Shown piece after piece: positions 1,243-58,936 of a stretch of DNA of 64,000 bases. Positions within the stretch are counted from its first letter, which is position 1, and every line of letters starts with the position of its first letter. Position numbers and translations under genes: made by a program. The notes beneath the pieces were generated by a model. It did no database searches. It saw only the letters and a list, made by a program, of their open reading frames with translations, and was not told the origin of the DNA. The DNA is from Octopus sinensis (Eukaryota): the NCBI RefSeq assembly GCF_006345805.1, contig NC_043006.1, positions 49,538,001 through 49,602,000 of the forward strand. Direction: 5' to 3'.

Positions 1243-3105
1243 TTTCCACTCCTTGAAAAGGACGGCACACTCACAGGAAATCCAATGAGAGTAAGTGAAA
1301 TACTAATGAGCAATTCAAGTGTAATTTCACTACCACCCTACGGCATTCAAGTCAGCAATCCAACTGACTTCTTTACCACTGCAGATATAAATAGAGGCAG
1401 CGATGATTGATTACATCAATATAAAGGAAGACGATGTAATAAAGGCTATTGATGAAATGAAAACCAACTCAGCTACTGGCCCCGATGGATTCCCAGCAAT
1501 CCTTCTAAAAGTATGTAAGAGAGTCCTAGCAAGACCACTGCAGTTCCTCTTTCAGAGCTTCCTTGCAACTGGCAAACTTCCAAGAAAACTGAAGGAAGGT
1601 AAAATATTCCCTATTTATAAAAGAGGTAGCAGAGTGGAGGCCAAGAACTACAGACCTATCTCTCTGACCTCACACATCAGCAAGGTCATGGAACGAATAG
1701 TCAGAAGGAAACTAATCACCTTCCTTGAAGAAAATGACTTGCTGCCTGACACCCAACATGGTTTCCGAACAGGAAGAAGCTGCTTAACTCAGCTCCTACA
1801 ACACTATGACTGGGGGTGCTGAAACGACTGCTCAACCACTCAAATGTGGAAGTCATATATCTCGACTTTGCAAAGGCCTTTGATAAAGTCGATCATGGAA
1901 TGATATGTCACAAACTGCGTGATCTTGGCATAGATGGAAAATTGGGAGAATGGCTTCATGACTTTCTGAAGGATAGAAGTCAGGTGGTAGTAGGCAATGG
2001 GGCCACTTCCATTAACACACAAAAGGTGAGCGTCGTTCCGCAAGGCACTGTTCTGGGACCACTACTGTTCATAATGGCCCTCTCAGACATGCCTCCAGCC
2101 ACGCAGAGAGCCACGATCACAAGTTATACAGATGATGCAAAAGTTTCACAGATAATACAGAACCCTGAAGACACTAAGCACCTGCAATGTGAGCTGGACA
2201 AAATATACAAGTGGGCTGAAAATAATAGCATGCAGTTCAATGCTGAAAAGTTTCAAGCTTTATGCTATCAGCATGCAAAACTAAATGCAATACCCAATAA
2301 ATACATTGGACCTGGAGGGATTGCAATCCCAGAGGCACAATCAGTGCGAGACCTGGGTATTTACATGAGTGATGATGCAACCTTTCATGTGCATGTTGCT
2401 AAATTGGCAATGAAATGTAGGTGGCTGACCGGATGGATTCTTAGAATCTTTGGAACAAGAGACCAGGAAACCATGATGGTCCTCTGGAGGACACTTGTCT
2501 TAAGCCACTTTGACTATTGCTCTCAGCTATGGTCACCATCCAGTGTCAAGTTAATCACAGAACTTGAGGCGATCCAACGAAGCTACACGAAGAAGATAGC
2601 CTCTGTGCAGCATATAAGCTATTGGGAAAGACTCAAGAGATTGGGACTCTATTCCTTAGAGCGTAGGCGAGAAAGATATGCCATAATATACATCTGGAAG
2701 ATCCTAGAAGGACTTGTCCCAAACTTTCGCATCGAGAGTTACACAAATGCCAGAACTGGGCGCCACTACATAGTGCCAAGGACTCCAAATTTGCCATCAA
2801 GATGTAGAACAAGATACTGTGATAGCCTGGGCTTCCGAGGCCCACAGCTCTTCAATATCCTCCCGAAGAACCTAAGAGACCTGCATGGGGTGGATGCAGA
2901 TGTCTTTAAAATAAAACTGGATCTATTCTTGTCAGGTGTCCCAGATGAACCAACTTCACGGCAGGAGGTGCAGATGAGGACAGCTGCATCGAACTCTCAC
3001 ATGCACCAAATGGCAATTGCTAAAAAGCATTCGTGAAGTAAAATCATGTAGCAACACCAAAATGCGGTGCCCCAGCATGGCCACAGCTTGTGAGCTGAAC
3101 AAGAT
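1243..3105 (+). mobile_element. 5'-truncated CR1-clade LINE (RT and C-terminus of ORF2), one frameshift near 1816
   Basis: ORFs 1403-1822 and 1816-3036 contain GPDGFP, YRPISLTS, QHGFRTGRSC, YLDFAKAFDKV, VPQGTVLGPLLF, a YTDD RT core and LGLYSLERRR; a short 3' tail ends near 3105. Confidence 0.93.
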
Positions 3106-3295
3106 AATATATAGAATATATATATATATATTATATATATATATTACATACATACCCCTATATAATATATTTATACACATATACACAGAAGGAGATATAT
3201 TTAGCATAAAAAACATAAATATATACAAATGCATATATATGTTTATACGCACACACACGCACGCGCATAAAACCTTCTGGTGTATGCTTATACAA

Positions 3296-6200
3296 AATCG
3301 AAGCGGCCAAAGAAGGCGAAGGAACCGGCGGTCGTTCCTGCACATGATCGTTCTTGTGCGGATTCTTCCTCATCTGCCTTTTCGGTCCCGGAGGTTCCCC
3401 AACCTAGTTCGAGGAGCGTAGACTCAAACCCACCTGAAGACCGTTGTTCTCCCCAAAAGAAGAAACGTAGTCAAAACTCCAGAGGGGCAGATTTGGCTAT
3501 GAAACCTGATCACGATAAAATCTGTTTGGATTCTCCTTCACTTGTCCTTCCCATTAATGCCATTGCTCAACCAATTCTGAACGATCTCGATGTGGGTTCA
3601 TCTGGGGGAGTGTGCTCCCCCAAACCGAAGAAGAGGCAGTGCAGTTCCAAACCAGCGGGAAAATTATGACCACAAATCCATTCCGATCGACCCCACAGGC
3701 CGACATAAGCCGATGGCTATGAAACCACCCTTTCGAAATCCTCCAATGAAGAATCGAATACCGCAGCTCATAGTAGAGACTTTTTGCCCACTCAAGATTG
3801 GCAATAATATATGGCAAGGCTGAATCCACCTGTGATACAGGCATAAACCGCCTAAAAGATGACATTAATTTTGTTTCCGTTTTGGTTGGAAAATTGTTCT
3901 CTGTGAACGAAAATGTCAGTGTTCTTAAGGTCGCTCGGCTAGGAAGATTCCAAGCGAACCCAACCGCAGATACTAGACCACGCCCAATAAGGGTAATCTT
4001 TTCTTCTGATCGGGAGGCTTCAGTCTTTCTGAACAGAGCTCAGACGCATGCCTGGGAGGACCCCAATATGGGTTTTCGCGAGGAATACTCACTAAGAGAG
4101 AGAATTCGCCGGAGGAACCTGATATCCGAGCTAAAGATGAGGAAACAAATGGAGAGAAGGGTTTACGAATCCAAGTGGACATATCAAGTCCTACCTCTGG
4201 TCCCATGCTGTAGTGCTGACAGGAAAGTGATGTGAGGGCAAATCGAAGTGAAGTTGATACCCCCGTCAACGATGCTATCTCTGATGCCCTTTATTCTGTT
4301 TGTGTTCCCAACTCCCGCCCCTCAGACTTCACAGCATCAGCATCGTCTACACCAACTCGTGCTCCTTATTCCCAAAGTTCAGTGAACTATTTACACTGGC
4401 CCTACGCGACTCCCCTGATGTGATAGCTATCACCGAGACTTGGCAGACTCCAGCAGTAAAGGACTCAGAGATCCACCTGCAGGGCTACGTCCTTTTCAGA
4501 TGTGACAGAGGAAAAAGGCGAGGTGGAGGTGTTGCTGTGTATGTTAAGTCTGAGCACAAACCGTCCTGCGGTATTCTACCCACAAATGCTCAACCTACAA
4601 CAAAATTCGATGCCGTCTATTGCAAACTGAGCCTATCTGAGTTTTGCCTGCCCGTGTTGGCTGTCTACAGGCCGCCTCTAGCCGACCCCCAGGACGATGC
4701 TCATCTACTCGAAGCGATAAGATTCGTTTCAGCTTCGCATGACTGCTTGGTACTAGGCGACTTCAACGCTCCCACGATCGATTGGCCCGCATCAATTTGT
4801 ACAACATCTTCCCGGTTCGGCCAGGCCCTTCTTGACGTGGCTGAAGATTGTTTTCTATCGCAACATGTTGAATATCCGACAAGCATCGGTCTGGGCAGCA
4901 GCCATCTATGCTAGATCTGGTATTCTCCCGCTATCCAAGATCAGTGTCAGACGTATCTGTGTGCGCCCCTCTTGCCAAGAGTGATCATGCGGTCCTGAAG
5001 TCGTCACACACAACTTTTTCCACGCCCACGATTACTTCGCTGCCACGTAGAGTCTTCTCTGCAATTAATCTTGAAATTCTAACCGAGGCTTCCGAGCTTC
5101 TGACTGGCGTTCCCTGATGACGTTGTCCTCAGTTGACGAACTATGGTCATCCCTCAAAGCATATGTAATCTGTTTGACTGACCAGGCAGTTCCCGTTGGA
5201 CTTCCCAAGAGGAAGAAACACAAGCCCTGGGTGACGAAGAAGGTTAAACGAGAACGTCGACTCAGAGATATTGCTTGGGCTGAATTCAAAAATCTGGATT
5301 CGACTGCAGCTTTTGAGGTGTACAAAACTCAACGAGACCGAGCCGTGAAAATTGAAAAGAAAAAATTCAGTTATGAATACAAAATCGCGGCAAATGCCAG
5401 TAGCAATCCAAAAACCTTCTTTGCCCATGTCCAGCGGAATTCCCGCTTGAACAACCAGATTGCAACGTTGGTAGACTCAACAGGCGTATCGATTGAGGAC
5501 CCTTATCAACAGAGTCAATTATTTGCCGAGGCTTTTTCAACTATTTTCAAACAAGATGATGGTCGTGAACCCCCTCCATTTGATAGATCGGTACCTCCAA
5601 TGCTTCGATTGATCATCACGCGGGACCAAGTCAAACGTTTATCCAAGGCCTCGATGTCAACAAGGGTCACGGCCCTGACGGCATACACCCACGGTTATCA
5701 AAGCGTTGGCTCCGGTCATCTGCGAGCCCTTAACACGACTATTCAATATGTCATTGGCGACGGGTGTTATACCTGCAGACTGGAGAACAGCGATAATCTG
5801 CCCAATTTTCAAGAAAGGGAGCCGCGAAGACCCGCTTAACTACCGACCGGTTTCCCCTACATCAATAATCAGCAAGATGTCGAAACCATCCTTAAGAAAA
5901 GTATGATGCTCCACCTCCTAAACCCACAGCCTCGATCACTGATTCCCAACACGGCTTCGTGCCGAAGAGATCATGCTTGACCAACTTACTAGTAATGGAA
6001 GAATTGGTGACGTGCATCCTCGATGATAGTGATGCTGTTGACATCGTGTTATTGGACTTTGCCAAAGCTTTTGACTCGGTAAACCACCGCCTACTACTTG
6101 TTAAGCTTCAAGCATATAGTTTCCATCCAGGATATGTACGATGGGTTGGTGCCTTCCTCTCAGATCGCTCCTTCCAAGTTCAAGTTAATGGTTCGCGGTC

Positions 6201-7200
6201 CGACGTCTCCAGTGCGAGCAGTGGCGTGCCTCAAGGTTCAGTGCTTGGGGCCTTGTTGTTCTTAGTCTTCATAAATGACTTGCCCGACGACCTCACGCAA
6301 CACACCCTTCTATTTGCCGACGATATCAAACTGGTCGCTCCTCGCGGTAGTATAGAGGATCTTCGTCGATGCCTCCACCAAATTTGGAAGTGGTCTAACG
6401 ATTGGGACCTGTGTCTGAACGTGTCAAAGTGCTGTCATCTGCCTGTCGGCTCTACTTCTGCAACTCAACTTGATTTCGAGCCGGGTCGTCTGCTGCTGAG
6501 AGGACCGATCAGGTAAAGGACCTGGGTATCTTGGTGGTATTCCTCCTTTTCGCCTTCGGCCCAGTTCGTCCATGCTGCCAACAAAGCGCGCGGAATTCTG
6601 TTTTTGATTCGACGGTCATTCGAATGCTCACAGCAGCCATATTCCTGCCATTCTATGTCACGCTGGTGAGACCCATATTGGAGTATGGGATTCAAGCCTC
6701 TTCTCCTTATCTCCTCAAGACATACAGCACCTCCAAGAGTCCAGAGGCTGGCTACCCGCATGGTTCATGGTCTCAAAAATTTGTCCTACGAAGAAAGGCT
6801 GAGGACGCTCGACCTTTGTTCTCTCTTGAAAAACGCCGCCGCCGTGGTGATCTCATTCTCGCCCACACATCATAAGCGGGAAGTGTAACCTCTCGAAAGA
6901 GCTGTTCTTCACTCCTGCTCCGGAGCGTCGGCTGCGGGGTCATTCCGAAAAGCTCTACCTGCGACGATTTCATCTCAATCGAAGGAGAGGAGCTTTCTCC
7001 GTCCGGGTTGCGGATCCGTGGAACAGCTGCCAGACGAGATGGTGAAGATGCCGACGACCGCTTTGTTCAAAGCCTCCCTGGACCTCAAGTGGCCTGAACT
7101 CTTTACATGAACACCACCCTGTACTTAACTCCATGTCCCCCACATGGCCTTGCTATTGCTTTTGAGCCAAATTAACTAACTAACTAACTAACTAACTAAC
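3296..7200 (+). mobile_element. Near full-length CR1-clade LINE (ORF1 remnant, APE endonuclease, RT), multiply frameshifted, (TAAC)n tail
   Basis: ORF1-type motif RLG..RPRPIRVIF; endonuclease motifs AITETW, RGGGVAVYV, VYRPP, LGDFNAP, SDHAVL; RT motifs LDFAKAFDSV, GVPQGSVLG, FADD; tail (TAAC)7 at 7173-7200. Confidence 0.92.
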
Positions 7201-12616: not shown

Positions 12617-13146
12617 CACACACCACTTCTCTATAGGTATATCTATGTGTGGTGTTCTTTGTGTTCGTGTTTGTTCCCCACCGCCGCTTGACGGGAATAT
12701 TATTGTATTAGATTTGCTGGTATGAAAGATGAAACCAAATTCAGCAAAATTTTAATTCGGAAACTGGAAAGGGTGTGAGGAAATAGTGCAAAGTATTTTG
12801 TCCACCAGTAATGATTCTACCAATCCTACCGCTTATAATTTTACAACAAAATTATAATAAAGGAGGAACCACTTTAATCCGTTGAGGAATAGGAAAGTGG
12901 ACATTGACAGTGATTAATCAAATCCGTGTTTTTTTAGGTGACCAAGAAATTCTATTGTGAAAAGGAAGTTACAATAAAATGAAAAACATTTTAAATACAA
13001 TTGAAAAACATATTTACCAGAATCATAACAATAGAATTTATTATTCCCCCAATTATTACCTTGTTTATAATCTCTTACTCATATTATAACAGGATACAAA
13101 ATGTCACTCACTGTTCGGCCCTGAATTGAAATGGTATTTCCAAGTT

Positions 13147-13154
13147 TATATAAA
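13147..13154 (+). promoter_or_regulatory. TATA box of P1
   Basis: TATATAAA about 30-36 nt upstream of an Inr-like CAAT/CAGT; conserved at 30247-30254. Confidence 0.6.
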
Positions 13155-13177
13155 TACAGGTGTATAGTTTGTGTTGC

Positions 13178-13254
13178 AATACAGTACTTCGTTTGGTGAA
13201 GACCATATCGCAGCACCTTTAGCGCTTCGTTGTACGCTTTCAGTGAATTGACAG
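13178..13254 (+). other. Predicted non-coding exon 1 of P1
   Basis: Lies between the TATA box and the donor CAG|GTACGT (13254/13255); strongly conserved in copy 2. The start position is approximate. Confidence 0.6.
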
Positions 13255-13912
13255 GTACGTTTTATTTAATACAACTAATGTGTTTCAGTATCTTGACTTC
13301 CTACATTAATAGGTGGTGGTCGGTTTTGTCGTGAAAGTTAGACAAAATAGTTGAGGTGTTTTAGTTAATTTCATTACAAACATTGTTCCTATTTCGAAGT
13401 GGAGTAAATTTCATCAATCTTTCAAAGATCGATGAAATAAATATGAATAAGAGTCTCACATATGCGCACGCACGAACACACACACACACACACACATGCA
13501 CACTCAAACGCGCACCACTTGCACGTGCACACACAGAATGTTGTTCACAGTGACTTCGAAGTTTCGACCAGCTAACCCAAAATCTAGCTGCGATGCATTT
13601 GAGTGAATCTTGCCTTCATATAGTCTCTGTTGCATTGAAATTATCTTTGGGTGTTTGGCTTTGTGTGAGGTGATTATTAGGTTCATACAGTCTGTTGATA
13701 TGGAAAGGTGTTTTGGGAAAATATTTTTATTGATGAAATTTGGGGTTTTGTTATTACTTAGAACTTATTCAGGCATGTTGACCTTTATACATTTGACTTT
13801 TGTATTGCCAAAGCAAAAGGAATAAATCCAACAATACCAAAAGCAACAAAAGTACTGCCATACCTTGTGCCTACCTGACAAAAGAGAAACACCTATAAGA
13901 AGTCTACAATAA

Positions 13913-14313
13913 GGCGCAGGAGTGGTTGTGTGGTAAGTAGCTTGCTTACTAACCACATGGTTCCGGATTCATTCCCACTACGTGGCACCTTGGGAACGTG
14001 TCTTCTACTATAGCCTCGTGCCGACCAAAGCCTTGGGAGTGGATTTGGTAGACGGAAACTGAAAGAAGCTCGTCGTATATATGTATATGTATATATATGT
14101 ATCTGTGTATTTATGTATTTGTGTTTGTACCCCCAACATCGTTTGACAACCGATGCTAAGTTACGTCCCCGTAACTTAGCGGTTCGGCAAAAGAGACCGA
14201 TAGAATAAGTACTAGGCGTCCAAAGAATAAGTCCTGGAGTCGATTTGCGTGACTAAAGGTGGTGCTCCAGCATGGCCACAGTCAAATGACTGAAACAAGT
14301 AAAAGAGTAAAAG
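13913..14313 (+). mobile_element. Full-length tRNA-derived SINE (GGCGCAGGAGTGG type) in P1 intron 1
   Basis: tRNA-like head, central (TA/TG)n, tail GGTGCTCCAGCATGGCCACAGTC..GAAACAAGTAAAAGAG; absent at the homologous site in copy 2. Confidence 0.85.
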
Positions 14314-14735
14314 TAATAAAAACATACGTTCACTACAGTTGAAGAAGCATCGGGTTAGCAGAATCGTAAGCACGCCAGACAGAATTCTAGGCTGTATTTT
14401 TTTCTGGCATCACGTACTGAGTTCAAATTCCGCTGAGGTTGACTTTGTCTTTTACTCATTCGGGGTTGATAAAATGTTCAGCACAGGGATCGATGTAATC
14501 AAGTTCACCTCTATCGGACTTTCAGATCTTATGCCTATAATAGAAATAATTATTACAGCTGGAGCAACTATATGATCATAGGTTAGCACTACCAAGCCTG
14601 GTTTGAGAATATCTGCTATAACAACAACAACATTAAACTTAAACTAATAATTGGACTTTTTTTCTTCTTTATTATTTTGAAGTAGTGAGAAAATATTTAC
14701 ACTGATCGTTCTTATTTTTCTATAGATAACCAATA

Positions 14736-14787
14736 ATGAAGACCACTATCTCTCTTTTGTTTGCTATGCTTTGCCTGTTTGCAGTCG
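14736..14787 (+). CDS. P1 coding exon 1: signal peptide MKTTISLLFAMLCLFAV plus 1 nt (phase 1)
   Basis: Acceptor TTTTTCTATAG| at 14725, ATG 10 nt later, hydrophobic core, donor G|GTGAGT at 14787; nearly identical to 33795-33846. Confidence 0.8.
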
Positions 14788-14979
14788 GTGAGTATGAATA
14801 CACACCATTTAGCTTTATATAATGCAGTATTGGATATTAATACGTGGGAATAATTGTTTCGTCATGCATAATTTATACTTCCAAACAACAATGTATACAT
14901 ATACATACATACGTACATACATATAAACATACATACATAGGCAGACATACATCCACGCACACATAGATATGTGTATGTG

Positions 14980-15018
<39 letters not shown>

Positions 15019-15096
15019 TAAAATTATATAATGTATGTATAATGTATATATATAAATCTCACTGTCTCTTTCTCACTCTCTCTCTTTATATATCTG

Positions 15097-15169
<73 letters not shown>

Positions 15170-16160
15170 GTATCTATCTATCTATCTATCTATCTTAGCC
15201 ATCGGTTAGCTATGCTAGGAGACACTTGACCAAGATAGTGTGCACTAGGATTGAACCCAAAATCACGCTAATGTAAAAATTACCATGCTCACATACTCAA
15301 TGTATGTGTTTGGCTCTCTCGCCGGTTCATTGTCGAACAGCACTTTGGAGACGACTTCCTCAAAACACTGGATGTTAAAACACCTGAATGTCATAAACAA
15401 GCTAGACAACTACCTTCCAATTCCATTTATGAGTGATGGATATTTCGCCATTTTTCTGGCGAAATGTCGAATCACCAGTCTATGACTATATACAAATAGT
15501 GTAATAACCATTTCCTGGTATGCCATGATAATGCTTACTTAAGATTAAATTCAATTACGAATGTGTATTATTAGTTCTGAATTTTGGCTCAAGGCGTCAA
15601 ACACCACCGCTCTCAATGAATATTAACATTTATATAAATGTCATATGGAGGTGATCTGGGAAAATCTTTAGCCTGTCGGTCACAAAGCTTAGCGGTATTA
15701 TTTCCGTCTCTACGTTCTGTACAGTAATTCCGTCGAGATCCACTTTGCCTTTCATCCTTTCGGAGTCGATAAAACAGTACCACTTGAACACTGGGTGTCA
15801 ATGCAATCGTTTTACCTCTTACCCCTGAAATTGCTGGCCTTGTGCCAATAGTTGGAATCATTATGAATATAAATTAAAGGGGGTGAGCTGGCAGAATCGT
15901 TAGCATGTCGGGTTCAATGCTTAGTTACACTACATCAGTACTTATGTTCTGAGTTCAAATTTCGCCGATGTCAATTTGCCTTTCATTAGTTCGGGGTCGA
16001 TAAAATAAATAACAGTCGAGCAATTGAGTTGATCTAACCGACTTATTCTTCCTCCGGAATTTCTACCTTTGTGTTAAAAAAAAACTGTAATCATTATTTA
16101 TAGATATGTATATTAATGTGTTTTTTTTTTAGTTTATCCTTTCAACATTTCATATTTCAG

Positions 16161-16345
16161 CTTATAATTGCCCTGCCGCTGCAAAGGTACCTGCAGCAGT
16201 TGCTGAGGCACCTGCCGCTGTAGATGTCGCCGCACCAGAAGTTGCCGCCGCAAATGCACACCTGGCAGCTGATGCCGCACACGTAGCCCCCGCAAATGAG
16301 GCAGCCCTTGCTGATGTTGTTGCAGCTGCCCCACACCGGCGATAA
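16161..16345 (+). CDS. P1 coding exon 2: Ala-rich mature peptide (A)YNCPAAAKVPAAVAEAPAAVDVAAPEVAAANAHLAADAAHVAPANEAALADVVAAAPHRR*; precursor 78 aa
   Basis: Acceptor TTTCATATTTCAG| at 16160; the phase-1 join gives an A-V-A|Y signal-peptidase site; GC-rich exon in an AT-rich background; Arg-TAA end aligns with P2. Confidence 0.75.
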
Positions 16346-17224
16346 AATAAAAGAATGGCCGAATTCTAATGCAAGCGATCAAGTAGCATACTTCCTTGGG
16401 CCATCATTTTTCGCCAGCTACGAAATCATCGCAAACGTAGTCCCCCATCATGAAAACGATAAAGAAATAAGTAGACAAACAACACCCACTTCCACATACT
16501 GCTGTTTAATAAATCAATAAGTGTAACTACAATAACAATATTCAATTAGTAATTGAGTTTGATGGAATATTCTGGAAGTGGAACCAACTATATTTCAATA
16601 ACGTCAGTGATGTTTAAGTATTAATTCCAAGACATTTGTAAAGAGTAAATTTTATTGAAATAAACATAAATTATTTTATCATATCTTTCTTTTGTCTTCT
16701 TTATTGCTCTCTAAACAAATTTATCACAAAATAAAAAAAATTCATAAAGATTTATTTATTTCAGTCATTGGACTGCATTTATACTGGGGTGCCACCTAGA
16801 AATGTCTTAGTCAAACAAGTCTATCGCAGTACTTTCTTTATAATCCTGTTACTTATTCTATCGGCGTCTTTTGCCAAATTGCAAAGTTATGGGGACATAA
16901 ACAAACCGACACCGGTTGTTGACGAGAAACATGAAAAAATGCACGCACACGCGCACACACGTACATAATATAATATATGATATAATATATACATTTAGTA
17001 CGGGCTTCATTCAGTTTCCCTCAACCAAATTCACTCTCCAGACTTTGGTTAACCTGGGGCTGCAGAAGAACACATTTGACCAAAGTGTCACGCGTTGGGA
17101 TAAAGTCCTAAATCATGTTGTAGGGAAGCAATGTTCTTACCACACAGCTAGGCTTCCCCCCATTTTGTATATCTGTAAAAAATGAAATGAAATTGGTATC
17201 TAATTCACTTAGTATCATAAAAAC

Positions 17225-29358: not shown

Positions 29359-29669
29359 ATATTTAAAATCCTTCGAAGCGGTAAGCCCACATTAGCCCAG
29401 CATGGCCCTGAATGACTGACAAATATTAATAAAAAGCAACATAAACAATATAGAAATAATTTTCATTTTGTGTCTTTTATTTGTTGCAAACGGTTCACTT
29501 TCTAATTCCTATATTTTCAGGAATTTGCAGAAGTTGAACTTAAATATATAGTTATCAACGATACTTATTGTCGATAATTTTTATCCAGTGTCCTTCGTAT
29601 CTCGTATCACTTCAACTCCCTTCTTTCATAGACACAGTATATCTGCGTTGCTAAACTTACTTGCATAAT

Positions 29670-29732
<63 letters not shown>

Positions 29733-30246
29733 TGGAACATTTTGAATCTGTGCTTCTTGGATTAGAGCTGATAGAGTTAAACAAGAAACACAAGCCAAGA
29801 AAATGCTTTCGTTGACCTCAAGTTCATGACTGGAACATTATTGTATTAAATTTGTTGGTATGGAAGATAAAACCAAATTCAGCAAAATTTAAATTCGGTA
29901 AGTGAAAAGGGAGTAAGGAAATAGCGCAAAGTATTTTGTCCACCTCAAATGATTCTATCAATCTTACCGCCTTTACAACAAAATTATAATAAAAGAGGAA
30001 TCATTTTTGTCCGTTTAGGATTAGGAATGCAGACATTGACAGTAATTAATCAAATCCGTGTTCAAGGTTTATTTTGGTGACTATGAAATTCTATTGTGAA
30101 TAAAATGAAAGCATATTTACCAGAATCATAACAAAAGAATTTATTACTCAGCTCATTCTTCTTTATAATCTCCTACTCACATTATAACAGGATATAAAAT
30201 ATCACGGTTCTGTTCGGCCCTGAACTGAAAAAGGTATTTCCAAGTT

Positions 30247-30254
30247 TATATAAA
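30247..30254 (+). promoter_or_regulatory. TATA box of P2
   Basis: TATATAAA at the position homologous to 13147. Confidence 0.6.
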
Positions 30255-30277
30255 TACAAGTGTATAATTTCTGCAAC

Positions 30278-30354
30278 AATACAGTCCTTCCTTCGGTGAA
30301 GACCATATCGCAGCACCTTTAGTGCTTCGTTGTACGCTTTCAGTGAATAGACAG
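30278..30354 (+). other. Predicted non-coding exon 1 of P2
   Basis: Donor CAG|GTACGT at 30354/30355; homologous to P1 exon 1. Confidence 0.58.
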
Positions 30355-31588
30355 GTACGTTTTATTTAATACGACTAATGTGTTTTAGTATCTTGACTTC
30401 CTACATTAATAGGTGGTGGTCATTTTTGTCAAGAGAGTTAGGCAAAATAGTTGAAGGTTTTTAGTTAATTTTATTACAAATTTGGTTCCTATTTCGAAGT
30501 GGAGTAAATTTCATCTATCTTTCAAAGATCGATGAAATAAATATGAATAATAGACTCACATATGCGCACGCGAACACACACATACACACACACAAACACA
30601 CGCAAACACACATGCGCACAAACGCACACACAAACACACATACACAAACGCACAAGCACAAACACACACATACACACACACGCGCAAACGCACACGCAAA
30701 CGCGAAAACACACACACGCAAACACACGCAGATGCGAAAACGCACAAGCGTACACACATATATTTTGATGTATATTATGTGTGTATGTGTTGTGCTTGTG
30801 TGTATGTGTGTACGCGCGTGTGCGCGCGCGTTTGTGTGTGTACACAGCACACACACATTATGCTTCTACAAGAATGTTGTTCACAGTGACTTCGAAGTTT
30901 CGACAAGCTAACCCAACGTCTAGCTGCGATGCATTTGAGTGAGTCTTGCCTTCATATAGTCTCTGTTGAGTTGAAATTATCTTTGGGTGTTTGGCTTTGT
31001 GTGAGGTGATAATTAGGTTCATACAGTCTGTTGATATGGAAAGGTGTTTTGGGAAAATATTTTTATTGATGAAATTTGGGGTTTTGTTATTACTTAGAAC
31101 TTATTCAGGCATGTAGAACTTTATACCTTTGACTTTTGTATTGCCAAAGCAAAAGGAATAAATCCAACAATACCAAAAGCAACAAAAGTACTGCCATACC
31201 TTGTGCCTACCTGACAAAAGAGAAACACCTGCAGGCTTGAAAAAAAATGTGTGTAGTACTATGTACAAGAAGTCTACAGTAAACATACGGTGACTACTAT
31301 TGAGGAAGCATCGGGTTAGCAGAATTATAAGCACCCCAGTCAGAATACTAGGCTGTATTTTTTTTTTCTGGTTTCACATACTGAGTTCAAATTCCGCTGA
31401 GGTCGACTTTGTCTTTCACTCTTTCGGGGTCGATACTGGGGTCGATGTAATGAAGTTCACCACTCACAAACTTTCAGATCTTATGCCTTTAATAGAAATA
31501 ATTATTACAGCTGGAGTAACTTTGATCATAGGTTAGCACTACCAATCCTGGTTTGAAGTAAATCGTGGTAACAACTATAAACTAATAA

Positions 31589-33731
31589 CACAACGTTACA
31601 ATTTTCAAAAAAAAAAAAAATTGTTTATTGTAATTTTTTTTTATTGTTTATCAATCCATTTTTTCTGCTGATTACAAAACTGAAATTATTTTTTGTGTAT
31701 CATCAACAGTTAAAAAAATATGTCGACTTTCAATGTTATCATATATTCGGTATTGTTATAATGTTCCGCTACTAAATGCATGTCTAATTTTCTCTTTCAG
31801 ACAAATTACTAAGTTCTGCTACTTTCAGAATGCCTACTAGAGTATGTAAAAATTCTCCAGATACATTTTGCTGTGTGTGGTTATTATATTGAAAACAAAG
31901 CAGGTATTACATAAGATCGTGAGAGGTACCAAATTGTGGATAGCGTACAGACTCTATTTCGGAATGCCCATGGGTGAACAGGACAAACCATGGGTCCCAC
32001 ATGTGATATGTGTAAGCTGTCGATCTACTCTAGAAAGATGGTTAAGAGGTACAGGAAGGTCAATGCTTTTTGCCATTCCAAGGGTATGGAGAGAGCCAAA
32101 GAACCATCACGATGACAGAAAAGTGAAAGGAAGACAATTTCTACGGTATCCAGACATACCACCATCTAGAGCACCTGTCCCACATGATGACAGTTTACGA
32201 GTACCACTACCACCAGAAAATATTTCATCTGAAGAGTCAACAAGTAGCAGCATCCAACAAATGGAGGAGGCTTTCGTACCAAGAACGAATTCGGAGCCTC
32301 ACTTTCCAAATCAGAGTGAGCTAGATGATTTAATTAGGGATCTGGGTCTTACTAAGTAAGGAGCTGAACTTCTTTCATCATGGTTGAAGGAATGAAATCT
32401 ACTGGGAGAAGACTGCAAGACATCTGTGTACCGGAAACGCCATGAAGAATTTGAAATTTACTATGAAAATATTAATGTTCAGTGTTATTGTAAAGATATG
32501 ATTGGTTTGTTTACTGCTATTGGACTCAAGCATGATTCTGTAGAATGGCGACTGTTCATAGATAGCTCAACACGAAGCCTCAAAGTAGTGTTATCCCACA
32601 ATGGAAATAAATATCATTCTTTGCCTCTTACACACTCCATACAGAAGAAAGAAAATTACGATAATGTCAAAGAACTTCTCGACAAAATAAATTACGCTGA
32701 GTTCAAGTGGGATGTTTGTGGTGATTTCAAGATGCTTGCTTTCTTGCTTGGCTTGCAAGGGGGATACAGAGTATTCATGTTTCCTTTGCTTATGGGACAG
32801 CAGAGCTGATGATGATCATTACAAGAGAGTACATTTGGGACCCATGAGTGGAACTGCAGCCAGGAATGTTAAATGTTCTCAAACATCCTTTAGTAGATTA
32901 CAACAAAATCTTATTACCCCCCCCCCCTTCATATCAAACTCGGATTGGTAAAACAGTTTATGAAGGCCTTAGATTTGTCTTATGTTTCAAGGGTGGCATA
33001 TTTGTTGGGCCCCAAGTAACTAAAGTCGAAGAAACTGGAAAGAGCGATGACAAAAGTTGGAAAAGAAGCTTGGTGTGCTTTTCATGATGTAGTTCGTGGA
33101 TTCCTAGGAAATCACAAGGATCCTAATTACAAACAGCTGGTAGCAAAACTTATTGAAAACTTCAAGAAAATGGGTTGTCGTATGTTCTTAAAGGTTCATT
33201 TTTTGCACTCTCACCTAGATTTTTTCCCCGAAAACTTGGGTGATGTCAGTGAGGAGCATGGTGAGAGATTTCATCAGGACATCGCAACTATGGAAAGAAG
33301 ATACCAAGGACGATGGAATACTGCTATGATGGGAGGTTATATATGGTCTCTAGTCAGAAGAGATGAAGGTATACACTCCAGCAAATCTCGATCGTCAAAG
33401 CACTTCTCATCTTAAGAAACAAATTATCAAGGCACTTACAGTGCAGAATTTTATTGTTTCTTTTTCTTCTAACTAATATTATACATCCTAAATACCTTTC
33501 AATATATGAAAAAGTACTTAATGTTGTGTAATTATCCTTACAACACGAGAAGAGATTGAACCAACAAAGTGATGTGGAGAAAAATTACAAATATAACGAG
33601 TAAATATGAAATTAGGAATAAATAGATAACTCTCGATGTTTTCAAAATGAATGGGACTTTTGAATTTAGTGGTAAAAAAAAGCATGTATGAACATTAAAA
33701 AATACAAATAAACAGTACGTGTTATATTGTG
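31589..33731 (+). mobile_element. Chapaev3-like (CMC) DNA transposon, 2143 bp, in P2 intron 1
   Basis: Termini CACAA...TTGTG with imperfect TIRs of about 12 bp; TAA duplicated at 31586-31588 and 33732-33734; P1 has the empty site AAACTAATAA-TTGGA. Confidence 0.8.
31830..33415 (+). pseudogene. Disrupted Chapaev-type transposase
   Basis: MPTRVCKNSPDTFC..CG, EQDKPWVPHVICVSC, WREPKNHHDD, CGDFKMLAFLLGLQGG, GIFVGPQ, HFLHSHLDFFPENLGDVSEEHGERFHQDI; several stops and frameshifts. Confidence 0.82.
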
Positions 33732-33794
33732 TAATTGGAGTATAGAAAGAAAATATTTACTGTGATTGCTATTATTTTCTATAGATAACCAATA

Positions 33795-33846
33795 ATGAAG
33801 ACCACTATCTCTCTTTTGTTTGCTATGCTTTGCCTGTTTACAGTTG
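33795..33846 (+). CDS. P2 coding exon 1: signal peptide MKTTISLLFAMLCLFTV plus 1 nt
   Basis: Acceptor TTTTCTATAG| at 33784 and donor G|GTGAGT at 33846; 16 of 17 residues identical to P1. Confidence 0.78.
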
Positions 33847-34091
33847 GTGAGTATGAATACACACCAATTAGTTTTATATAAAGTAGCAGTGGATATTAAC
33901 TACTAGGGAATAATACTTTTACAATTCCAAAAAACAATGTATATATCCATATACATACATACGCACATACATACATACATACATACATACATACATACAT
34001 ACATACATACATACATACATACGTACATACACACATATACATAGATATGTGTGTTTGCGTTGATATATATATATATATATATATAATATAT

Positions 34092-34141
<50 letters not shown>

Positions 34142-34927
34142 ATATAACGTAAGAGAGGGAGGAGAAACAGATTTCTTCATCCACATTCAAACTCACTTTC
34201 TAATCTGTCGTTGGGCCAAATATCGGCAAAATATGTATGTATATACAAAGACAAAGAAAGGGAGAAAGAGTAGTTAAAGCCAAACTCCAACGTGTTGAAT
34301 GGCCGTTGTTTTTGTAAAAATAAAAATAAAATAAAACCAACGGACTTTTCTTCTTGGTACGAAAATGATGTAAGGCGGACAAAATAAATGAAGTCGATTT
34401 TATTAGTTACTGTGGTCAATACAAAGCTAGTTTCACGATTAATGTACAAACTAAATAAATCAATTTTTTAAAAATTAATTTATTTTTGAAGCACATGTTT
34501 TGATCTTTAGTTATATATATAATATTATAAGAAAAAATATGAATAACTATAAAACATATTTACCTTCATTTATCCACATCAATTCGTAACCTAAAGTATT
34601 CGGTATAATGCAAACAGTAAGAGAGGGAGAAGAAATAGACTTCATCCACATTCAAACACGCTTTCTAATCTGTCGCTGGGGTCAATGTAATTGACTTACT
34701 TCTTCCTCCGAAATTGCTGGTGTGTTCTGAGTTCAAATTTCGATTTGCTTTTCATTATTTCGGAGTCGATAAAATAAGTACCTGCTGAGCATTGGAGTCG
34801 ATCTAATCAACTTACCCTTCCTCCGGAATTTCTACCTTTGTGCTAAAAACAATGTGAACAGTATTCATACATTTGTATATTAATGTGTGTTTTGTTTATT
34901 TCGTCCTTTGAACATTTTATATTTCAG

Positions 34928-35055
34928 TATATAACTGCCTTGTTGCTGCTGCAACCACTGCAAAGGTACTCGCAACAGATGCAACCCACGCAACAGGTGC
35001 AGACTACTTAAATGGAACAAGCTATATGCTATTCCTGTATGCCAAAGACAGATAA
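34928..35055 (+). CDS. P2 coding exon 2: (V)YNCLVAAATTAKVLATDATHATGADYLNGTSYMLFLYAKDR*; precursor 59 aa
   Basis: Acceptor TTTTATATTTCAG| at 34927; YNC start, AKV motif and Arg-TAA end align with P1; 3' UTR conserved. Confidence 0.68.
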
Positions 35056-35492
35056 GATAAAAGAATGGGCGAATTCTCATGCAAACGATCAAGTAGACGT
35101 AGTAACTTGGGTCATCATTTTTCGCCAGCTATTTCGATTAGTAATTGAGTTTGATGGAATATTCTGGAATTGGAACCAGCTATATTTCAGTAACGTCAGT
35201 GATGTTTAAGCATTAATTCCAAGACATTTGTAAAGAGTAAATTTTATTGAAATGGACATAAATTATTTTATCATATCTTTCTTTTGTCTTCTTTATTGCT
35301 CTCTAAACAAATTTATCACAAAATAAAGTACTTCATAAAGATTTCTTTGTTTCATTCATCGAACTGCGGCCATACTAGGGTGCCACCTTGAAATGTTTTT
35401 GGTCAGATGACTTCAAATTTTGACAACATGTGTAGAAATAGCTCAAAAGGTTATGTTTATTGTTTGATATGTTTTTCTTTTCAGGTATAGAA

Positions 35493-35615
35493 ATGGCATT
35501 CAGTGGAAGAGAAAAGGCGTTTTGTGTGTTGGAGTATGCTCGAACACAGTCGAATAAGACTGTGCAGCGTGCATTTGTGAGAGAGTTCTCTGAAAAGACC
35601 CCAACGGTAATGCAG
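35493..35615 (+). mobile_element. Tc1/mariner transposase N-terminal (HTH) fragment
   Basis: MAFSGREKAFCVLEYARTQSNKTVQRAFVREF, truncated by a SINE. Confidence 0.7.
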
Positions 35616-55996: not shown

Positions 55997-58936
55997 TGAC
56001 GTTTTGGCGGCGAGGTTGGCCCTCGACCAACACTTCAACGCCAAACACGAAGGATGTGCTGTCAGAGCTAGGATGCGTGCTTTAAGGAACGAAGGTGTTG
56101 GAGCCGCGAGAGAGGCCCGGGTGGCAGAGGCGCAACAGGGCAACAAAGCCACCATTCGGTCCCTGGTAGATGAACAGGGGCGCGAATTGCTCGAGCCAAG
56201 TAAAATGTGTGAGGCCTTTCAGCAGCATTTTGCCCGACTGTTCGGAACGAGTGGAGGGCAAGAACGTAGGGTGGACTTCAGTGCCTACCTACATAGCCTA
56301 CCACGACTCTCGACAAGAAAGGCAGGGTGCTGCGAAGGTGCCATCACGGCGGCGGAAGTGCAGGAAGCGATGGCAGAATGCTCGAGGGACAAATCACCGG
56401 GTTTGGATGGTCTACCCTACGAGCTTTACAATTGTATGCCAGACTTGTTTGGAGATCTCTTGGCGGCGGTGTACTGCAACTGGCAGCAAAACGGGAGCAT
56501 TCCTGGTTTTGTGAGCCGAGGAGCCGTAACACTGCTGAAGAAAGATCTAAACAAGGGAAATGTAATAGATAACTTTAGGCCCATCACTCTGCTTAATGCA
56601 GACTTGAAAATTTTGGCCAAGGTGCTAGCCAAGAGGTTGGCGCTTGTCATCGAGAAACTGGTCGACAAGGCGTAAACATGCGCCGTGCCGGGCCGGACCA
56701 TCCATGAAAACCTTCACCTGATGCGCTACATCATAGACAAGGTAGTTAACGAACCTGGCATGGGTGTGGCGCTGATCAATTTGGATCAATCGAAAGCTTT
56801 CGATAGGGTAGACCATCGATACTTGGAGAAGGTTCTCAGAGCGGCTGGCTTCGGTCCCGTCTTCCGCGGCTGGATAGCCGCTTTGTACAGAGGCATCCGT
56901 TCGGTAATTCGCGTGAATGGACATCTATCGAGACCCTTCGACATCGCACGTTCGGTCCGTCAGGGATGCCCCCTATCGTCGCTTCTATACGTATTGACTC
57001 TCGAGCCATTATTGCGGAAGCTGGCAACTTTGAGGGGCATCCCGCGAGAACTGGGATGCGGGACGAGCGTGTCTGCATACGCGGACGACGTGACCGTCAT
57101 AGTGTCTAGCCAGGAGCACATCGAGCAGGTCGGCGAGACACTGAAAAACTACGAAGCGGTGGGTGACAGGAGCGAAAATCAACCGGGAAAAGTCAGTGGC
57201 TTGCGACTAGGCACCTGGAGAAGCAAGCCCATGCCGTCCACCAGCGCCTCCGTCGTGGACGCTGGACCGACGGCCCAGTTGAGTTGTGGGTGCTGGTTTG
57301 GTCCGAACCTCCAGTGGAAAGTGGAGACGGAGAACTCGGTAAGTGGAGAGAAACTGAGATAACGAGTAGGGTGGTCACTCTCGCCCGGCAATGGGCCGAG
57401 GAGGAAACTGTCCCTAAAAGGTCGAGCGGAGGTGGCGAACACGTACATCGCGTCCGTCATCTACTACCGCCTGACCGTCGTACTTTGTCCCGACCCTACC
57501 ATCACCAAACTACAACGCATTCTCTTTCGCTTCTTGTGGAAAGGATGCGTCCCGATGGTCAGGCGATCCATTTGCTGTCAACACCCGTTAAAAGGAGGAC
57601 TGGGCATGCCGTGGTTGATGATGCGCAGACACACGCTGAGACTGCGACATCTCAGGCTCTTCGTAGACGACGGTGAACAGGTGTGGTCGCCGTTTGTGAG
57701 GCACGCTTTCCCGCAGCTCGTCTCCATGACCGAACTGCAGTCGTGGATAAAAAAAAGGCCGAGGAAGGGCGAATGGCACCGCGAGTGTCGCGTTGCTCTC
57801 AAGCAACTCTGCCGTCCTGGGTCGACCTTGAGTGACTTCAACACAACCAAAGCATTCTATAGGGGATTAGTGGAGGGGAGGTACGACGACGAGCTCGGGG
57901 CCAACCTGGACGTCGACGAGGAGTACCTGACCCGCCTGCTCAGGATGAATTTCGGGCCAGGGCCCATGGATAACTTCCAGAGATCCCTGGCCTGGCAGTG
58001 CTACCGAGAAGCGCTACCCGTTCGGGATAAGCTCTACAGACACGGCTCGAGAAACACGGGGTCAACCTGCCCGAGATGCGGTCAGAGCGACGAAACCGTT
58101 CTGCACGCACTCGTGCAGTGTCCAACAATTTCCGACCTGTGGGCTTATGTCGAACAACTGCTGTCACGTGTGGGACGAGTCGGTTTATCAGCTGAGTCTA
58201 TCGTCAATATTGTCACGCCTCTTTCCTTCAAACGGGAAGGAAGAGCTATTTTCATCATCCTTGTGGCTATGGCGAAAGAATGTATCTGGTGGACGCGTCT
58301 GAAAGGATTGGAGACAAACACTTTCCTCTCTGGTCAATCTCTCATCAACTTCTTCAAGTACCACTTGAAAAGGAAAGTGAGAGTAGAAAGGCAAGTTTTG
58401 TCTAGCGAATGTTTTAAAAAAAGATGGGTGAATGTAGCAAGGATGGCACGTATGAATGACGAAGCCACCTTGAGCATAATCCTATGAACCCAGAAATTGA
58501 AAACAGAGGGTTACCACTTGCAAACAAATGTGGTAACATATAACAATATTGACCAAGGTTACCGTGGTCTTTTTCGGCTTTTCTTCCCACGGATAAACCT
58601 TACTTGCTTTCCCCTTACACCATATATCATAACACTGTGATACACGATCCCTATTGATCGTTTTTATTCCTCTTCCCCTTTTTTTCTTTTTTTCATTTCT
58701 CTTTTCTTTTGTTCCTTTTCCTTTTCTTTCTTTTTTTCTTTTTATTCTTTTTATTTTTTATTTTATTTATTTATTTTTTTTTGTTCTTTTCTTCCCTTTT
58801 ACGATCCCTCTTGATCGAAAACCTACGCCACCTCCTTTTTTTCTTTTGTTTTTTGTTTTTTTCATCCCCCCAAAGAAAAGCTCTACCTTGTAACTTGTCC
58901 CATCTGTGTGCAGACCTGTGTGGCCAATAAAGAGAC

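Follow-up and report, generated by a model that had tools for sequence, protein, structure and literature searches.

The DNA analysed here, called the window throughout, is a stretch of 64,000 nucleotides from Octopus sinensis (NCBI RefSeq assembly GCF_006345805.1, contig NC_043006.1, positions 49,538,001 to 49,602,000 of the forward strand); positions are counted from its first letter. It carries a three-exon gene model, P1 (13147-16345), for a small, predicted secreted, alanine-rich peptide. A paralogous model, P2, lies about 17 kb from P1 (30247-35055, + strand) and has the same three-exon anatomy. P1 had been proposed in a preliminary description made from the letters of the window. P2 is new relative to that description and provides the main comparative evidence for the gene model.

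The P1 gene model and its paralog

The P1 model was rebuilt by script from the bases of 12900-16600. This confirmed, base for base, the TATA box, exons, GT-AG sites, phase and coordinates of the preliminary description (Table 1). The putative transcription start is placed at an initiator-like ACAGT about 36 nt 3′ of the TATA box. Exon 1 contains no ATG at all, and its donor is conserved at 9/9 positions in P2. The first ATG of the model, with an A at -3, is located in exon 2 (14736) and opens 52 coding bases, i.e. 17 1/3 codons of signal peptide (MKTTISLLFAMLCLFAV + G). The donor of this exon (TCG/GTGAGT) is hence in phase 1, and exon 3 completes codon 18 (Ala18) before encoding a mature peptide of 60 amino acids (YNC...PHRR). 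The spliced coding sequence (CDS) comprises 237 nt and translates into a precursor of 78 amino acids, MKTTISLLFAMLCLFAVAYNCPAAAKVPAAVAEAPAAVDVAAPEVAAANAHLAADAAHVAPANEAALADVVAAAPHRR. The earlier counts for this precursor are exact: a cleavage site A-V-A/Y and a 60-residue mature part with 27 Ala, 6 Pro, one Cys, no Thr and a C-terminal HRR. In the genomic sequence the frame of exon 3 lacks any ATG, GTG or TTG start; P1 was for this reason missed by the list of open reading frames (ORFs).

Downstream of the stop codon, the P1 flank contains four AATAAA motifs (16346-16351, 16509-16514, 16659-16664 and 16730-16735). Only the last of them has an AATAAA counterpart in P2 (35322-35327). A 120-nt piece of this flank (16421-16540), which includes the motif at 16509-16514, is missing from P2.

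The second copy came to light in a tBLASTn search with P1 as query, which returned another signal exon in the window at 33795-33845. Comparison of the window with itself delimits one gene-sized duplicated unit, 12689-16808 versus 29827-35399 (4.1 and 5.6 kb), and nothing else. The two copies share the TATA box, donors, acceptors, ATG context, phase and stop position. The P2 precursor is MKTTISLLFAMLCLFTVVYNCLVAAATTAKVLATDATHATGADYLNGTSYMLFLYAKDR; the core of its signal peptide is identical to that of P1, and its mature peptide of 41 amino acids is Ala/Thr-rich, with an N-G-T sequon, a hydrophobic tail and one Cys.

Table 1. Positions of the P1 and P2 features and of examples of the SINE-like repeats
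Feature	Position	Strand	Remarks
P1 TATA box TATATAAA	13147-13154	+	identical in P2 at 30247-30254 (12/12 bases)
P1 exon 1, non-coding 5′ untranslated region (UTR)	13180-13254	+	putative start; ends at donor CAG/GTACGT
P1 intron 1, GT..AG	13255-14725	+	filled by a (CA)n microsatellite and short interspersed nuclear element (SINE)-like repeats
P1 exon 2	14726-14787	+	10-nt leader, then start of signal peptide; preceded on the acceptor side by ttatttttctatag
P1 intron 2, GT..AG	14788-16160	+	(TATC)n and (TA)n microsatellites, SINE-like repeats
P1 exon 3, coding part	16161-16345	+	preceded by catatttcag; stop TAA at 16343-16345
P1 putative 3′ UTR	16346-16735	+	putative poly(A) site
P2 TATA box and exon 1	30247-30354	+	97/108 bases identical to P1
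P2 exon 2	33785-33846	+	ATG at 33795; signal peptide MKTTISLLFAMLCLFTV + G
P2 exon 3	34928-35055	+	finishes Val18, then YNCLVAAATTAKVLATDATHATGADYLNGTSYMLFLYAKDR and stop
SINE-like repeat, example	13912-14313		
SINE-like repeat, example	14358-14500		
SINE-like repeat, example	15644-15809		
SINE-like repeat, example	15877-16048		

Intron 1 of P2 additionally harbors an insertion of about 2.2 kb (31557-33747) which is found in this copy only. It holds three consecutive ORFs in different frames (31868-32359, 32426-32809 and 33047-33415, + strand), none of which has a match in Pfam. The insertion is probably a degraded transposon, which either entered P2 once the duplication had occurred or disappeared from P1. 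Just 3′ of P2, a short ORF fragment beginning MAFSGREKAFCVLEYARTQSNKTVQRAFVREF (35494-35610, + strand) is, we presume, similar to the N-terminal helix-turn-helix of transposase-derived proteins.

Divergence of the copies, composition and searches for relatives

Identity between P1 and P2 is high along most of the duplicated gene: 87% upstream, 90% in exon 1, 87-97% in the pieces of intron 1, 97% in exon 2 (60/62 bases alike), 77-85% in the pieces of intron 2 and 88-91%, in part up to 97%, in the 3′ flank. The CDS of exon 3 reaches only 56%, with 61 gap columns. A sliding count over 40 columns delimits the island of divergence to 16185-16344, with 78-97% identity on both sides. This island is contained in the mature-peptide CDS: it starts behind the conserved (A/V)YNC and extends to the stop codon, and YNC is the only motif of the mature peptide common to both copies. 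The copies differ by 57 nt, i.e. 19 codons; both frames are nevertheless open and the stop position is homologous. Since a neutral stretch cannot so outpace its own flanks, the mature CDS would be either under diversifying selection or a slippage-prone coding repeat whose frame is maintained. An estimate of the ratio of non-synonymous to synonymous change (dN/dS) was discarded because the mature parts are not alignable codon by codon (proportion of synonymous differences, pS, 0.78).

Two further observations concern this alignment. One mature stretch is recognisably homologous, LAADAAHVA in P1 (16262-16290) and LATDATHAT in P2 (34969-34995). At two of its positions Ala (GCN) in P1 faces Thr (ACN) in P2, an A/G difference at the first codon position. 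A-to-I recoding, as it occurs in coleoids, would mimic a change of this kind, but a link is no more than an idea. Furthermore, two non-coding stretches are 95-97% identical between the copies (13535-13894 versus 30871-31230, and 16544-16743 versus about 35136-35335), which hints at gene conversion or at a regulatory or UTR constraint.

The composition of P1 exon 3 is unusual for its surroundings. Its GC content is 0.60, compared with 0.30 and 0.365 in its 200-nt flanks. By codon position the values are 0.90, 0.60 and 0.33: only the first two positions show the excess, and the third has about the GC content of the window overall. Such a distribution is the one expected under a constraint at the amino-acid level. 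Apart from its own antisense frames, P1 is the sole strongly Ala-rich stop-free stretch in the window, with 21 Ala in its best 40 residues against 11 in the next best. Tandem Repeats Finder detected no tandem repeat above threshold in P1 exon 3. Degenerate 28-nt repeats are present in it at spacings of 21, 18, 30, 27 and 33 nt, all multiples of 3, and appear at the protein level as Pro-started Ala/Val modules.

A scan of the window for ATG-started signal-like stretches produced 11 candidates, four of which are soon followed by a GTRAG donor. Two of these four (24572 and 55558) look microsatellite-derived (CVCVCV), and once they are set aside only the signal exons of P1 and P2 are left. A further signal-like ORF, on the minus strand at 29466, was rejected as a chance ORF of 24 amino acids running into an apparent copy of the SINE-like repeat of the window. 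Taken together, the composition, the signal-exon scan, the ATG-free exon 1 and the paralog show that the P1 gene model is more than chance.

Searches for relatives gave a uniformly negative picture. Among 5.8 billion proteins, P1 had no match at E<=0.01 and P2 had no candidate sharing three 5-residue words with it; the signal peptide is therefore absent from this collection as well. The collection includes octopod proteins (NCBI, UniRef) and related entries from ENA, JGI and Logan. As octopod proteins are present and P1 is not, the gene would be either unannotated there or limited to species without products on record. A profile of both mature parts had 0 matches at E<=0.001 among 1.84 billion representatives, Pfam-A contained no family matching P1 or P2 up to E<=10, and PDB sequences yielded 0 matches at E<=10. 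The literal peptide strings occur in 0 of 8.3 million papers, a degenerate DNA pattern of the signal exon in 0 of the JGI metagenome contigs, and literature searches for Ala-rich secreted cephalopod peptides returned general reviews only. The preliminary description had recognised no named family, and the protein collections, Pfam and PDB agree with it: P1 is filed under no named family, and its resemblances are compositional only.

The remainder of the window is rich in mobile elements. Frame-broken copies of long interspersed nuclear element (LINE)-type retrotransposons lie at about 1400-6900 and 56000-58500 (+ strand), with Exo_endo_phos, RVT_1 and zf-RVT domains. For the LINE ORF at 57432-58487, the named matches are a protein of Argonauta hians (identity 60%) and a UniRef entry from Octopus bimaculoides (97% over a short stretch); closer matches exist, one of them labelled as a bacterial metagenome-assembled genome. 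At least two SINE-like repeat families occur in many copies on both strands, also in both P1 introns. No tRNA or Rfam match was found in the region, SINE-like repeats included. The duplicated unit itself has no terminal inverted or direct repeats at its ends and is therefore not obviously a mobile element.

The predicted product and competing explanations

After cleavage at A-V-A/Y, the mature part of P1 would consist of A27 V8 P6 N3 E3 D3 H3 L2 R2 Y1 C1 K1. It lacks Thr, Ser and Gly. The calculated mass is 5.7 kDa and the isoelectric point (pI) 5.31, or 4.56 without the terminal RR. The only basic sites of the mature region are Lys at mature position 8 and the C-terminal RR, and the sole Cys occupies position 3. 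The signal peptide agrees with a Sec/endoplasmic reticulum (ER) check, which is a rule-based prediction only. The rule asks for a basic residue near the N-terminus, followed by 7-15 residues of hydrophobic core, with small neutral side chains at positions -3 and -1. P1 has Lys2, a hydrophobic core with a mean Kyte-Doolittle hydropathy of 2.8 across residues 5-17, and small residues at -3 and -1 (A-V-A before Tyr19). AlphaFold2, run without alignment, gives low confidence and no regular structure for P1 residues 1-24 and a helix for residues 25-55, with a predicted local distance difference test (pLDDT) score of 80-96.

The functional part of the preliminary description fared unevenly. Its spliced gene model, signal peptide and small Ala-rich product stand and are repeated in P2, whereas two of the roles considered for the product are disfavoured. 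A mucin-like role, i.e. glycosylated mucus, is at odds with a mature part which has neither an N-x-S/T site nor any Ser or Thr and hence no glycosylation site of either kind. A classical cationic antimicrobial role does not fit a pI of 5.3 (4.6 without RR) and a hydrophobic moment no higher than that of shuffled sequences. The idea of an amphipathic helix or a metal-binding stripe was abandoned on the latter ground too. A structural or gland-product role may apply.

We consider, with a probability of about one half, that P1 and P2 are a real, unannotated gene pair for small secreted low-complexity peptides, restricted to octopods or a subgroup of them. A TATA-type promoter would then drive a short three-exon P1 transcript, whose first ATG would open a signal peptide of the classical kind, with Lys2, a hydrophobic core of 15 residues and A-V-A, and send the precursor to the ER. 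Cleavage before Tyr19 would release an acidic product of about 5.7 kDa, rich in Ala, Val and Pro, which should not be glycosylated because it is free of Gly, Ser and Thr. The N-terminal third of this product would be flexible and interrupted by Pro, and the C-terminal half is probably helical. Through the Cys of the N-terminal Y-N-C, P1 would form a disulfide with another P1 molecule, with P2 or with a partner in a matrix, and the terminal RR would probably be taken off by a carboxypeptidase. The Ala/Val/Pro region may act as a structural or space-filling low-complexity domain built from degenerate in-frame repeats. In evolution, the mature region would shift by in-frame expansion, contraction and rapid substitution, with promoter, signal peptide and UTRs held constant. 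P1 would in this way be an extracellular low-complexity peptide of the matrix or secretory-product type, made by a specialised gland or secretory epithelium.

Several points weigh against this proposal. The duplication is young (about 10-13% neutral divergence). Conservation of the signals of the gene model, at 76/80 nucleotides against a background of 88.5%, is consequently only marginally above expectation (p about 0.04). Open frames arise in about 10% (P2) and about 17% (P1) of composition-matched shuffles. The predicted cleavage site of P2 is T-V-V; as Val at -1 suits signal peptidase poorly, P2 is possibly decaying, and it may instead be diverging in function. For an Ala-rich sequence such as P1, a helix predicted without alignment is weak evidence, and the hydrophobic moment of the modelled helix (25-55) is matched by 24% of shuffles, so it is not significantly amphipathic. 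The sequence points to no particular tissue or matrix. Finally, the absence of both from the 5.8-billion-protein collection means that no recorded annotation pipeline or assembled transcript has produced them.

The same island of divergence could also be explained if P1 were an exocrine or signalling peptide with bioactivity and diversifying selection acted on it. Its role could be salivary or venom-gland, skin-defence or reproductive/pheromonal, it would perhaps act as a disulfide-linked dimer, and its target would lie in another cell or organism. We regard this as possible but rather unlikely. The contrast between a signal exon at 97% and a mature part at 56%, with divergence from just after YNC to the stop codon, would suit such a peptide, yet low-complexity in-frame repeats suit slippage-driven divergence equally well and dN/dS is not estimable for mature parts that do not align reliably (pS 0.78). 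Local gene duplication, a TATA-type promoter with a short gene body and a C-terminal dibasic pair are also consistent with it, against which stand a single Cys without a cysteine framework, an acidic (pI 5.3 or 4.6) and not significantly amphipathic product, and the lack of internal dibasic sites and of an amidation Gly. A more far-reaching version, in which P1 and P2 are founding members of an unseen, octopod-restricted secreted family, young or possibly de novo, with a mature region under positive selection next to unchanging signal and regulatory parts, seems improbable to us; it would make them a new cephalopod exocrine class of Cys-linked dimers, with salivary/venom, skin or reproductive sites as candidates.

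At the opposite end, the pair could be a non-functional, recently duplicated gene-like stretch, i.e. pseudogenes or a proto-gene, whose Ala-rich frame is a by-product of GCN-rich low complexity. GCN-rich sequence keeps frames open, and exon 3 of P1 is open in each of its three antisense frames, but only codon positions 1 and 2 carry the GC excess, with position 3 near the GC of the window, length changes preserve the frame and the stop is homologous. Likewise, signal conservation only marginally above neutral and the poor -1 residue of P2 would agree with decay, whereas a first ATG leading into a textbook signal peptide and then a strong donor is found, besides P1 and P2, nowhere in 64 kb outside microsatellites. 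The transposon debris around the genes and the lack of a homolog or annotated product in the searched collections add to the case, and the 56% identity beside flanks of 78-97%, in an island confined to the mature CDS, speaks against it because a neutral region cannot reach this value. On balance we find this explanation doubtful. Far less probable is a different strand or extent, namely an antisense ORF over exon 3 (16134-16382, minus strand), a larger gene or an exon-carrying mobile element. The minus-strand frame across exon 3 is open in P1 and P2, but this openness is forced by GCN codons, the frame has no ATG in P1 until its last residues, and it overlaps both the conserved acceptor and the 3′ flank that belong to the sense model. 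The first two grounds led to the rejection of the antisense ORF. The gene-sized duplicated unit (4.1 and 5.6 kb) would allow for a mobile element, which was rejected for want of terminal inverted or direct repeats and with only two copies in the window. In both copies a stop codon and AATAAA signals come directly after exon 3, which also argues against a different strand or extent.

If the preferred gene pair is expressed, P1 is a gene missed by standard pipelines, with a tiny product, a start-less coding exon and no homologs. It would then add to the lineage-specific secreted repertoire that is believed to lie behind novelties of cephalopods, among them suckers, beak, skin, venom and egg coats. 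Should it not be expressed, P1 is an instructive near-gene. The biological reach is modest until tissue and product are shown. The pair is in addition a clean case, offered by nature, of a hyperdivergent low-complexity mature peptide joined to signal and regulatory parts that stay constant, and could help to separate slippage-driven from selection-driven change.

Comparison with known systems

Several classes of small secreted peptides share some traits with P1. Arthropod cuticular proteins such as the low-complexity, Ala-rich CPLCA group are small and secreted and carry AAP(A/V) repeats. The P1 motifs APAAV, AAPEV and VPAAV are reminiscent of them, but P1 stems from a different phylum and has no chitin-binding or other family signature and no Pfam match. 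Type I antifreeze proteins are small and secreted, exceed 60% in Ala and form a helix without interruption, in which Thr recurs every 11 residues. P1 is likewise small, Ala-rich and predicted to be secreted and helical; it has 45% Ala, 0 Thr and 6 Pro, and no match in PDB. In the venom peptide superfamilies of cone snails and the skin peptide superfamilies of amphibians, a constant signal is joined to a hypervariable mature peptide. The near-identical signal exon, the hyperdivergent mature part and the local duplication of P1 and P2 recall these families as an evolutionary analogy only. In contrast to them, P1 and P2 have no cysteine framework, propeptide or cationic amphipathic helix, and two copies are seen.

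Three other peptide classes do not fit P1. Neuropeptides and prohormones would be recognised by bioactive peptides set between internal mono- or dibasic sites, often with an amidation Gly, and by conservation across species. In P1, Lys at mature position 8 and the C-terminal RR are the only basic sites, Gly is lacking, and the mature region differs even between P1 and P2. It differs from cationic amphipathic antimicrobial peptides by its acidic pI and non-significant hydrophobic moment. The mature peptides of P1 and P2 contain one Cys each, compared with the at least four patterned Cys of cysteine-framework toxins and defensins.

Two cephalopod protein families resemble P1 in composition. Suckerins of decapodiform sucker ring teeth are built from tandem P[M1]P[M2] units with a Gly/Tyr-rich M2 and are high in Gly, Tyr and His (PMC11931252). 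P1, predicted to be secreted as well, has Pro-flanked Ala/Val/His modules (P-AAVAEA-P-AAVDVAA-P-...) that resemble suckerin [M1], and P2 has its Ala/Thr/His flavour. P1 is nevertheless acidic, contains Gly 0/60, Tyr 1/60 and His 3/60, and has neither an M2-like stretch nor a search match to suckerins. The histidine-rich beak proteins (HBPs), secreted structural proteins of squid, have C-terminal GHGXY and GAGFA-type pentapeptides, and Gly, Ala and His together exceed 50% (PMC11931252). The N-terminal regions of HBPs are Ala-rich and His-containing with a pI near 6, and in this respect, as in its predicted secretion, P1 is similar. It has no GHGXY or GAGFA pentapeptide; Ala and His sum to 50% but there is no Gly, and His accounts for 5%.

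The best parallel is a functional class rather than a homology family. Lineage-specific secreted proteins of molluscs are often Gly- or Ala-rich and fast-evolving, with repetitive low-complexity domains (RLCDs) (PMC5400390). P1 is very short (60 amino acids) by comparison, has weak repeats and shows no similarity to these proteins in sequence searches; most octopods, moreover, have no external shell. With the RLCD proteins of mantle and shell matrix (PMC5400390), P1 shares a signal peptide, an Ala bias, degenerate repeats and the lack of homologs outside a narrow lineage, and P1 and P2 similarly change fast by expansion, contraction and rearrangement. The class is defined by a signal peptide, a biased repetitive domain, rapid evolution and expression in a secretory epithelium (PMC5400390); the first three of these features are seen in P1, which is a candidate member. 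By this analogy, the evolution of P1 and P2 appears to match the pattern of lineage-specific low-complexity proteins in molluscan secretomes (PMC5400390). The pair would represent a new sequence family, but one of a well-known kind: the taxonomically restricted small secreted low-complexity peptide.

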